In this document: one piece after another, positions 49,986 through 53,985 of the stretch | Numbering within the stretch: the first letter of the stretch is position 1 | Layout of the letters: each line of letters opens with the position of its first letter | Source of the DNA: Utricularia gibba | Lineage: Eukaryota; Plantae; Magnoliophyta | NCBI GenBank assembly: GCA_002189035.1 | Contig: CM007991.1 | Location: forward strand, 3,782,001 to 3,846,000 | DNA: 64,000 nt | Direction: 5' to 3' | Program-made: the position numbers and the translations under genes | Notes under the pieces: model-generated | Told to the model about the DNA's origin: nothing | Database searches by the model: none | Seen by the model: the letters and a program-made list of their open reading frames with translations, nothing else

Positions 49986-51714
49986 TCATACGAGCTCGAT
50001 GAAGGCCATGGGAGCATTGTCTCCCCTGCGCGGCAGAGTTCTGATGATCCTCGTGTAGCCTCCTTCTCTGTCTCCGTACCTGTCCTGGACCTCAGCGAAG
50101 AGGGCGTGCACGATCTGCTTCTCGTAGATGAAGCCCAGGGCCTGTCTCCTCTTGTGCAGAGACCCGTCCTTGGCCAGCGTGATCATCTTGTCAACGTACT
50201 TCCTCATTGCACTGGCCCGTGCTCTTGTCGTCTTTATCCGCCCGTACTTGAGGAGCTGAGTGGTCAAGGACCGTAAGAGCGCTCGTCGTTGATCCGGGGG
50301 GCGGTTGAGCTTCGGCACCTTCCTTCCGTGCCTCATGGCTGAGACCCGGCCACCGTTGTCGATGCAGGGGAGGGTGAGGGAGCCGGAACCTGGAAAATCT
50401 GCAACCAGATCTAGGTGAGAACGAGCTGATGAGAGCTTCCACTCCCACGAAAAGAGATTACCGGGATATGTAAGAATAGACAGAGATGCTATTTCACCTT
50501 ACTGTGTAAGAACGCAGAAACCATGGCAAAGAGTGAAATCTAGATGAGAACAAACTGATACGCGGTTCCACAACTAGGATTAGAGTTTCCCATATCATGT
50601 AAGAACACACTGTATACTATTTCACCTTACTGTGTAAGAACACAGCAGTAACCATGGAAAAAAGTGAAAATCTTGTGGAACCAAATCTAGATGAGAACAA
50701 AGTGATAAGAGGTTCTACATCCACGAAAAGAGATTACCAGACGATGTAAGAATAGATAGAGGTACTATTTCACCTTACTGTGTAAGAACACAGCAACCAT
50801 GGCAAAGAGTGAAATCTAGATGAGAACAAACTGATACGAGGTTCCACACCTATGATTAGAGTTTACCATATCATGTAACAACACACTGTATACTATTTCA
50901 CCTTAGTGTGCAAGAACACAGCAACCATGGTGAGGTAAAATCTCGTGGAACTAAATCTAGGTGCGACTAAACTGATAAGTGCTTCCACGCCCACGAGAAG
51001 AGTTTACCAGACCATGTAAGAATAGACAGATACTATTTCACCTTACTGTGTAAGAACACAGCAACCATGGCGAAGTGAAATCTTGTGGAACCGAATCTAG
51101 GTGAGAACAAATTGATAAGAGGTTCCACACCTATGACTAGAGTTTCCTATACCATGCAAGAAGACAAAGAATACTATTTCACCCTACTATGAAGTATGTA
51201 AAAGAGCGAACACGGGTAAGTGTAATCATGTGTTTTTCTAAGCATATAGATCATGCTGCCTCCCCTTGTTTTATCTATGCAAAGACCCATGAATTGGGAC
51301 AACACAGTACCACGCAATACACAGGATAAACCCTGTCATGCCTACACTAGCAAATGGAACCACAAAGTCACTCACATTCAGCATTAATAGGCAGCAATCC
51401 TAACAAAATTAACCATCATAATCACAAATTAAGGGACTAGCTCCAAAAAAAAACATCACAACCAATTCAACATTGAGTAGAGAAGCTGGTCATTTCGAAA
51501 AAGAAGTAGAAATGCACAGCCACACCCTACCTCGATTTAAGCTCACGGTGTGCAAAGGGGCGAGACCCACGTAAGAATTAAGGGGCCTCGGGCCGCTCCT
51601 GAGCCCAGAAAACTTCAATCCAGAGGACGCCGGCCCCTGCCTGCAACAAACGGAGGTCCCGGTGTTTACCGAAGGGAGTGCCACTCGAAGAGCAGAAAGA
51701 TTCCAGGACGCCAT
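49986..51714 (-). CDS. RPL17: Plastid 50S ribosomal protein L17 with transit peptide, 2 exons (51531-51714, 49986-50398)
   Basis: [15 protein letters not shown]...SYVGLAP transit peptide joins in phase 1 to [31 protein letters not shown]...[12 protein letters not shown]. Confidence 0.95.
50408..51195. repeat. Intronic minisatellite: five full units (128, 148, 128, 140, 141 bp) plus partial units at both ends
   Basis: CTATTTCACC starts at 50489, 50617, 50765, 50893, 51033 and 51174. The five full units continue ..TTA.TGTG.AAGAAC.CAG..ACCATGG, ATCTAG.TG.GA and GTT..AC. Confidence 0.92.
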
Positions 51715-51901
51715 TGTTGCGGTTCTGGGTTAAGAGAAGGAACAGAAGAGGATAAGTTGCTCTAGATCCTTTTCATATTTTCCTGAATGCCCCGAAATTA
51801 TGATTTATTTAAAAAGCGCCCTCTCATTTCACGTTTTTTATCATTTGAGCACGCTTTAGTTCAGAAAGGAGTGAACATGGGCGGGGGGGAATGGAGGAAT
51901 G

Positions 51902-53513
51902 ATGTTAAAGATTCTGCCTTTTATTTCTTCTCCACGTTTTCTCTGTCCGGGCTATTCCGTGCGCCGCCGATTTGTCCGTGTCTTGCCCCCTTCTGGTGTT
52001 GTTCCGATCTGCGGGTCTTACTGTACGCGGGCAAGTGTTCGTTCTTGAGCTTCACACTGAAAACTCATTCACTATGCCGAATGACCGTTGTTCTTACATA
52101 AAAAAAATGCAGGTCCAAATGGAGTCTGAGAGTTATATGTTTGGTACTTACAAAATCGACCCTAAGGAAGTGTTTTATACCACTAGGCTTTCGTACGCTC
52201 TGGTCAATTTACGCCCGGTTGTTCCTGGTGCACATTTTTTCCATTTGATTCTGTTTCTTTCTTAAGTTCAGTGCTTGATTTTGTGGGGCTTGCGTTCGTG
52301 GAATTTCACATGCGTTTGATTGGAAAGTTAGTAGAGTCGGGTGACAAACCTTGATGTCCTAGATTAGTTTGGAGCCTGAATCTGGAATCTTGATTAATCA
52401 ATTTTCAAAACTTTTTGAAAGATGAAAAGGCCGGCATGTTGATTTTGCTTTAGAACCCCCATGACAATTTACAATGTGAAAACTTCTAGATCCGTATTTG
52501 TAGCATCAAAATTCCTTCTGACACAGCATATGTGCGATCTTCAGTGCAAGTGATACATGAATCAATTATCTTGAAGCATTTGTGGTTATTTTACCACATT
52601 CAAAGTGATATATGCTTTCCTAGTTTTTCCACACGCAAAGTGATTTTTTCCATGTTGTCCCGCATTATTCTAATGTCCTTGTTATCCTATTGCAGGTCAT
52701 ATCCTTTGCTCTTTTGACAACAGCATGCCCTGTTAGTGGCATGCTTTCTTATGTTATTTGGGTTGACGCTGGTAGCATTTATACTCTAAATTTTGTTTCC
52801 TGTGACGTGTAGCATGTAGCTCACTGAAGTAATCTTTGGCGAGTTTTTTGAGTTTGCATGTAATACTACAGCCGCAGCACTTGAAAAATTAGAGCTATAA
52901 AAGAGCATTTTCGATTTAGTGTGCACTGAACATGTCTGCTGTCTTTTTTGGTTGCCCTTGACGAAAATCTACATGTGCTTGTGTGCCCAAGACGTATTGT
53001 GAAGCGCGTTGCTGATCTCTCTGCTGATGAAGTAAGTGATTTATGGCTCACTGCGCAGCAGATCGGACGCCATCTTGAGTCGTACCATAAAGCATCTTCA
53101 CTTACATTTACCATCCAAGTAAGATTGAGCAAGCTTTTGATAATAGAAATCACAGATAATTCTCATGAAGCTTATTATGAATGCTGTTTCATTAGTTTAG
53201 TTTCGAATCCCTCTAACTTTAGTGTACCTCCAGGATGGGCCTCAGGCAGGTCAGACAGTACCCATGTTCACATCCACATCCTGCCACGCAAAACCGGTGA
53301 CTTTGAGAAGAATGATGAGATTTATGATGCTGTAAGATGATGCCTATGCAATCTTTTCTTCGGTTTAAACTCCTACCATGATAACCCTTTGGACAGATTG
53401 ATTTGAAGGAGGAAGAATTGAAGCAGAAGCTTGATCTGGACATTGAGAGGAAGGACAGGACCATGGAGGAGATGTGTGAAGAGGCAAGTGAATACAGGAA
53501 GCTCTTTTTGTAG
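51902..53513 (+). CDS. FHIT: FHIT-like bis(5'-adenosyl)-triphosphatase (HIT family); exons 51902-52030, 52113-52227, 52696-52698, 52973-53118, 53234-53331, 53397-53513; apparent 1-bp deletion at 53261-53263
   Basis: [52 protein letters not shown] and DLDIERKDRTMEEM. The exon between two phase-0 introns is 98 nt instead of 99. Confidence 0.92.
52696..52972 (+). other. 3-nt microexon (GTC, 52696-52698) followed by a U12 AT-AC intron (52699-52972)
   Basis: TTGCAG|GTC|ATATCCTTT ... CCCTTGAC(52955-52962)GAAAATCTAC|ATGTG restores P-G-H-V-L-V-C. Confidence 0.85.
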
Positions 53514-53985
53514 AGAAAATTGTATGAATCGTCAATGAGACTCTGTAAAATGCACTGATCAGTGACCATAGGTACAAGCAGCTTCTGCATAGTATTGTGT
53601 CACTGTTCATCTTATTTCATTTTCATACCAGTGCAATGGGATATGTAAACTACAACTAAAGCCAGTAGGTATTCATCATCTTATAGTCTCCACCCCGGCT
53701 AAAAGCATTCAGGCATCTCAACTCATCCCAGCGTTCGCGTGCAGCTGCACGAGCAACATCCCTGATACGGTAATCTGTGGGTGCATAAAGGTACCCGATA
53801 AAGTTGTCCAAAGAAGAACTACACAGTTCCATGGAGAAGTAGCTGTTCTGTCACCTCTCATAAGCTGCATTGCCTTCAGAACGTTGGTTTCTGGATTAAC
53901 ACAGCGTTGGTTTAGGATTTAGGAAAGTGAGAGGAAAGGTGGAGGTCCGCGTGACAGGTAGCAAGAGAAGATAATGAAGAGCAGC

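Follow-up and report, generated by a model that had tools for sequence, protein, structure and literature searches.

What lies at this locus? The window analysed here, a stretch of 64,000 nt from Utricularia gibba, contains on its plus strand a FHIT-type gene of six exons, one of which consists of the three nucleotides GTC (Table 1). The transcript evidence stems from four runs labelled 'RNA?' (of ten matching), which represent four studies and two organisms and were aligned to positions 51500-53800; these data are assembled contigs and not raw reads, so that rare isoforms drop out of them. The first coordinate of exon 1 is the start of an RNA contig and no mapped transcription start. At the first joint, two letters are ambiguous, and a shift by +1 yields the GC..AG ends given in the table. 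Exon 2 carries the ATG at 52119 and encodes 36 residues plus the first base of a glycine codon; the GTC exon contributes the second and third bases of this codon together with the first base of the following histidine codon (G/GT C/AT). Upstream of the gene, in 51531-51761, contigs with high expression (depth up to 540 in run X5) end at 51531 and have unrelated sequence before this point, which points to a neighbouring gene with an exon spliced at about 51531.

Table 1. Features of the FHIT-type gene in the window
Feature	Position	Strand	Evidence
Exon 1 (5' UTR)	51897..52030	+	RNA contigs X1 record 2 and X6 record 15: 51897/51904-52029 joined to 52112 onward
5' UTR GC-AG intron, 82 nt, GCAAGT...GCAG	52031..52112	+	RNA joint 52029->52112, three runs
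Exon 2	52113..52227	+	translation, RNA contigs
Intron A, major-type GT-AG, 468 nt	52228..52695	+	331-nt contig of X1; same position in four other land plants
3-nt exon GTC	52696..52698	+	mature mRNA holds CCTGGTCATGTG; identical in four other land plants
Intron B, minor-type AT-AC, 274 nt	52699..52972	+	sequence; absent in mature contigs, kept in intermediate contig; four other land plants
Exon 4, (H)VLVCPRRIVKRVADLSADEVSDLWLTAQQIGRHLESYHKASSLTFTIQ	52973..53118	+	Pfam HIT match; joint 53118->53234, GT..AG
Exon 5, His-triad exon	53234..53331	+	translation, RNA contigs
Last exon, IDLKEEELKQKLDLDIERKDRTMEEMCEEASEYRKLFL, stop codon ends 53513; 3' UTR to at least 53651	53397..53651	+	translation; joint 53331->53397, GT..AG; contig extent

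The gene is a FHIT gene

Over its N-terminal 86 residues, the protein shares about 80% identity with FHIT-named proteins of several asterid species, and exon 4 alone matches the Pfam HIT family above its gathering score (25 bits at a cutoff of 21.5, E = 3e-5). The orthologue from Curcuma matches solved FHIT structures with E = 7.5e-43, with PVVPGHVL conserved. In the assembly, the His-triad exon is split over two frames, with CCC at 53261-53263. All four RNA runs, however, have an additional C after 53260, and have it at full depth (CCCC), and in the X1 contigs this extra C is the sole difference from the window. Thus, the assembly misses one C and the expressed gene is intact; the missing letter probably reflects an assembly error in a homopolymer and does not mark a dead gene. 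With the RNA-supported C in frame, exon 5 encodes an intact H-x-H-x-H triad (HVHIHI), and the expressed protein comprises 157 residues, a length shared by many annotated plant FHIT isoforms.

Could the locus nonetheless be a pseudogene, its junctions stemming from a paralogue or from contaminating DNA? The 1-nt frameshift in the assembled His-triad exon would point in this direction, as would a 799-nt contig of X5 that is unspliced and differs at 19 positions. But the X1 contigs, while otherwise equal to the window, hold the extra C just as all four runs do, and five spliced joints with canonical ends identify the contigs as RNA. We therefore regard this explanation as most improbable, and reject a pseudogene reading of the exon 5 frameshift on account of the C found in every RNA run.

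Splice sites around the GTC exon

Exon 2 ends with CCTG at 52227, and intron A starts with GTGCAC, contains a pyrimidine-rich tract and ends with TTGCAG. Direct reading of the sequence recovers all elements that the preliminary description had assigned to a 3-nt exon and its flanks: TTGCAG at 52690-52695, GTC at 52696-52698, ATATCCTTT as donor at 52699-52707, and CCCTTGAC as branch site at 52955-52962. The branch A (52961) precedes the final base of the intron by 11 nt, and the intron closes with CTAC and not with an AG; its terminal AC occupies 52971-52972, and ATGTGCTTGTGTGCC follows from 52973 onward. The signature of U12-type introns consists of ATATCCTT at the 5' end, a CCTTRAC motif near the 3' end and the lack of a pyrimidine tract. 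In intron B, the letters at 52699-52707 match the U12-type 5' splice site /ATATCCTT perfectly, the stretch between the branch site and the AC is purine-rich and without a pyrimidine tract, and the CCTTGAC branch motif is succeeded by GAAAATCT, as in the 3' end of a U12-type intron, where a TCCTTRAY branch site is located about 8-20 nt from the splice site. Judged by its 5' splice site, its branch site and their spacing, intron B presumably depends on the U12 spliceosome.

The reading frame bears out the proposed role of the three nucleotides. Translation with GTC yields P-G-H-V-L-V-C-P, restoring the motif with its Gly-His as originally proposed, whereas translation without it yields PVVPDVLVCP and thus a loss at the conserved site. 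How much of this could be coincidence? On its own, ATATCCTT has two matches in the window against 3.4 expected, and we have dismissed it as evidence by itself for this chance-level occurrence. The string AGGTCATATCC, however, is expected 1.3e-4 times in the 745-nt interval between exons 2 and 4, and CCTTRAC at 8-20 nt from the end of the interval 1.2e-3 times, which places the combined configuration far beyond chance. The evidential weight is thus carried by the joint, frame-restoring configuration together with RNA and conservation, not by any single motif.

RNA evidence for two separate introns

Mature contigs span the interval in two of the runs, X1 (depth 32) and X5 (depth 143.8), which stem from different studies of the same organism. 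In both, the joint 52229->52972 produces CCTGGT/CATGTG, which equals CCTG, GTC and ATGTG joined in this order. As reported by the aligner, with no ambiguous letters, this junction has the ends GC..TA, and one could conceive of a single non-canonical intron from 52230 to 52971 that is removed in one step, with no microexon and with an internal AG/GTC/ATATCCTT of no relevance. Since the mature mRNA sequence is the same for one intron and for two, it cannot by itself separate these models.

What does separate them is a 331-nt contig of X1. It joins 24 nt of exon 2 at 52226/52695, where a cut moved by +1 gives GT..AG ends, i.e. 52227->52696, and after the joint it is colinear with the genome over 52696-53001, so that 24 and 307 nt account for the entire contig. 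Here, intron A is gone and intron B is present, showing that the TTGCAG/GTC acceptor is used on its own and that intron A can leave while intron B remains; in a one-step removal, a product running from exon 2 to 52696 with intron B kept is impossible. While this contig could be a dead-end isoform with a retained intron instead of an on-pathway intermediate, the use of the acceptor is proven either way. In X1, intron B is covered to a depth of 12.9 and intron A to one of 4.8, an excess over intron B that is in line with U12 introns usually being removed more slowly.

Taken with the mature contigs, the acceptor at 52695/52696 is in use, GTC is present in the mature mRNA of both X1 and X5, and the AC at 52971-52972 serves as the other end of an AT-AC junction, the mature contigs joining ...GTC to ATGTG. 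The two kinds of contig thus agree with the proposed GTC exon between a GT-AG and an AT-AC intron, and the junction, for which RNA mapping had been suggested as a check, reads CCTG-GTC-ATGTG. A joint of 52227 with 52973, the cDNA lacking GTC that would have contradicted the proposal, is not listed among the contigs of the four runs, which would drop a rare form; skipping of the exon may occur at a low level. The persistence of GTC in the mature mRNA also led us to reject recursive splicing through an exon of zero length. The unspliced 799-nt contig of X5 extends from exon 2 to exon 4 (52201-53001) and represents another allele, cultivar or homeologue, with two 1-nt deletions relative to the window besides its 19 differences. 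None of these falls within 52690-52707 or 52955-52972; about one would be expected there by chance, such that their absence is not significant.

Conservation in land plants

We compared the window with the genomic loci of four annotated orthologues, and the same position in these genes, from moss to eudicot, shows an identical layout. Introns A and B measure 1189 and 205 nt in the monocot Curcuma longa, 55 and 81 nt in the lycophyte Selaginella moellendorffii, 168 and 418 nt in the eudicot Theobroma cacao and 189 and 381 nt in the moss Sphagnum magellanicum. In all five FHIT genes, the sequence follows the pattern CCNG/GT, CAG/GTC/ATATCCTT and AC/ATGT; Sphagnum, Selaginella, Curcuma and Theobroma share with the window both an unchanged GTC and the form of the 5' splice site of intron B. 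The T of GTC is synonymous, and that all five genes share it is only suggestive of a constraint from the splice signals. A branch motif CCTTGAC or TCTTAAC is found 10-12 nt from the AC in four of the five genes (window, Curcuma, Theobroma and Sphagnum), while the one branch-like candidate in Selaginella, CCTTGAT, is placed 36 nt before the AC, a long distance for a U12 intron. The 3-nt exon of the window is real and expressed, and its presence in all five lineages examined makes it ancient in land plants.

This comparison also bears on the single non-canonical intron reported by the aligner. Defined in this way, its ends would vary from gene to gene: GC..TA in the window, AC..TA in Curcuma, AA..TA in Selaginella, AA..CA in Theobroma and AA..AA in Sphagnum. 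The model of two introns, in contrast, yields GT-AG plus AT-AC in all five, and AGGTCATATCC, despite its expectation of 1.3e-4 occurrences in the interval, is present in each of them. With the intermediate contig and the inconsistent ends across species both arguing against it, we reject the GC..TA intron, the probability of which appears very low to us. We consider it highly probable that FHIT contains two independent introns 3 nt apart, of which A is removed by the major and B by the minor spliceosome, with GTC staying behind as a constitutive exon.

A further possibility accepts the microexon and assigns only the removal of intron B differently, namely to the major spliceosome, and thereby counts it among the U2-dependent AT-AC introns, which are rare but are reported to exist (PMC1557818). 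In intron B, however, the 5' end with ATATCCTT, the CCTTRAC motif 10-12 nt from the 3' end and the lack of a pyrimidine tract constitute a U12 signature, whose elements have been kept in four or five of the examined genes for about 450 million years. We hence deem removal of intron B by the major spliceosome very unlikely.

Gene models of the junction in databases

How is this junction represented in annotated proteins? Several hundred homologous proteins came from a profile-free search that used exon 4 as query and from two further searches for homologues, and a census was taken on the first 264. In this set, 116 proteins have P-G-H before VLVCP, 11 have P-G-N, 5 have P-V-H and 3 have P-A-H, and further models leave the motif out by jumping over it. 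The 3' end of intron B is read through in many open reading frames, always as xxA-C/AT and thus as 'H'. P-D occurs in the UniRef entry J3NAW8 of Oryza brachyantha, while the NCBI model of this gene is one residue longer and has P-G-H. At the Theobroma locus, exon 2 is followed by GTAAT, and a model can take GTA together with an AT..AC intron, though CAG/GTC/ATATCCTT is present; as such mis-modelling explains P-G-N at this locus, we rejected it as a true variant of the microexon. P-V-H and P-A-H would fit an acceptor placed 3 nt early, where the base at -3 is T or C. In isoform X1 of the Selaginella RefSeq annotation (P0270), the sequence G-H-I-L-S... corresponds to GTC followed by the 81-nt intron B in frame, the intron (L005:2824-2904) being translated as a 27-residue insertion. 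As the insertion begins after GTC, this model uses the same AG/GTC acceptor.

In public gene models, the junction is often wrong (P-D, P-G-N, P-V-H, P-A-H or read-through), but most have a correct P-G-H. GTC equals the GT of the donor of intron A plus the C of the acceptor of intron B, so that one non-canonical intron is enough for any aligner to arrive at the right mRNA. This identity is probably the reason that databases so often contain the correct protein, even though the exon itself may lack annotation. Mis-modelling of the junction affects many plant genomes; through it, the conserved Gly-His of the nucleotide-binding motif is lost or replaced, or the intron is read.

Discussion

How might two spliceosomes deal with a 3-nt exon? 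Following the background on recognition by the two machineries reviewed in PMC8329584, three nucleotides would not hold U2AF at the acceptor and U11 at the donor together, which would make definition across the exon unlikely. As they are too few for complexes on both exon ends, each intron is probably recognized across itself. Intron A would be defined by U1 with U2AF/U2, and intron B by the preformed U11/U12 di-snRNP, which would bind the 5' splice site and the branch site as one particle. The introns would then be removed one after another, usually with the faster U2 intron first, and once intron A has left, the U12 donor would lie behind a normal exon of 118 nt. Skipping of GTC, on the other hand, would combine a U1-type GT donor with a U12-type branch site and AC acceptor, which would be an unproductive pair; such pairing may explain both the reliable inclusion and the long persistence of so tiny an exon. 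Put together, this would mean that a GTC exon with its two ends on different spliceosomes has stayed unchanged since the ancestor of mosses and flowering plants, its inclusion being enforced by the incompatibility of donor and acceptor, a tentative scenario to which we assign somewhat less than an even chance.

Recursive splicing at AG/GT ratchet points leaves nothing in the mRNA and employs the major spliceosome in both steps. FHIT resembles it in that a long interval would be taken out in two ordered steps via an internal acceptor, and differs in that three nucleotides remain and that the second step uses an AT-AC donor of the U12 type. Three-nucleotide exons described in animals lie between major-type introns, and most of them are alternative. 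The GTC exon of FHIT, in contrast, looks constitutive, spans two codons of a motif and lies between introns of two spliceosome types. What it has in common with the animal exons of MAP4K5 (PMC8632122), Drosophila homothorax (PMC7392893) and cytohesin-1 (PMC6314551) is the length of exactly three nucleotides, by which one codon-equivalent is added or completed; all 3-nt exons reported in the literature searched are from animals.

Plant microexons of 1-15 nt have been catalogued, the 1-nt exons of APC11 and VPS55 among them (Yu et al., 2022, PMC8831610; MEPDB, PMC12409088). Like these, the GTC exon is a few nucleotides long, coding, part of a conserved motif, deeply conserved among land plants and often mis-annotated, and it is probably constitutive, but while their flanking introns are GT-AG or GC-AG, its downstream intron is AT-AC and of the U12 type. 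For discovery and modelling alike, the survey accepted only GT-AG and GC-AG introns (PMC8831610); the FHIT exon could thus not have been reported there, and the supplements of that survey contain no FHIT or HIT entry. Conserved U12-type introns of plants are likewise known, among them intron 4 of CBP20 (PMC5932401) and those AT-AC introns that work on DROL1 and TITAN LIKE has dealt with (10.1101/2020.10.19.345900; 10.1101/2025.02.25.639993). Intron B shares with them the AT-AC ends, ATATCCTT, a TCCTTRAY-type branch site near the 3' end and a position fixed in land plants; what sets it apart is that its upstream exon measures 3 nt, so that its U12 5' splice site abuts a U2-type 3' splice site.

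The closest precedent for contact between the machineries is the USSE of SNRNP48 and RNPC3, where U11 and an upstream U2-type 3' splice site engage in exon-definition crosstalk (PMC8329584). As there, FHIT has a U2-type acceptor with a putative U11-binding site downstream of it, and the outcome probably needs both spliceosomes. In the USSE, however, the spacing is selected for cross-exon contacts and the isoforms are regulated and unproductive (PMC8329584), whereas in FHIT a spacing of 3 nt is probably too short for simultaneous occupancy and the mRNA is productive. Neither FHIT nor the exon is mentioned in MEPDB, in the angiosperm exon-intron, DROL1, TITAN LIKE and U12-evolution papers or in the intronIC supplement, and we found no description of the 3-nt exon of FHIT in the open literature, subscription journals and database records being outside this search. 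It combines two known kinds, the microexon and the U12 intron, in a way that is undescribed in the literature searched.

If our reading is true, FHIT provides an undescribed natural case of the major and minor spliceosomes acting at a distance of only 3 nt, which leaves exon definition no space, and represents a class of microexons that existing plant catalogues exclude by design. Current models of crosstalk build on cross-exon contacts, with U11 at the U12 donor and U2AF at the upstream acceptor, for which 3 nt leave no room. The exon would thus lend itself, as a naturally occurring substrate, to the questions of how both machineries handle one pre-mRNA, in which order they act and whether incompatible splice-site types can serve as a guarantee of inclusion where an exon is too small for definition. 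In practical terms, microexon pipelines restricted to GT-AG and GC-AG introns miss every exon of this kind, and catalogues of U12 introns built from such annotations miss the AT-AC intron of FHIT.

Where could two adjacent introns of different types have come from? The FHIT-like gene of Chara braunii (380 aa; L004:2501-3643) is intronless, unlike all land-plant copies examined, and in one compact non-plant genome there is no intron at the site of the microexon; neither is of help in dating the origin. The FHIT gene of a metagenomic eukaryote (L012:380-640) contains one GT-AG intron, located precisely where plant intron A lies (CCTG/GTAATT...ATCAG/GCCATGTG), and none at the intron B position. 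In the non-plant open reading frames P0137, P0130, P0134, P0138, P0122 and P0150, the first of which is from the fish Cirrhinus molitorella, the protein text, from which this reading is taken, corresponds to xxA-GAT(-GTG) before VLVCP, and such an xxA-GAT indicates an AG-ending intron at the C/AT position of the plant intron B. The FHIT gene of this fish appears to have only this AG-ending intron at the intron B position. The land-plant exon may thus be a remnant caught between two old intron positions that are found singly elsewhere.
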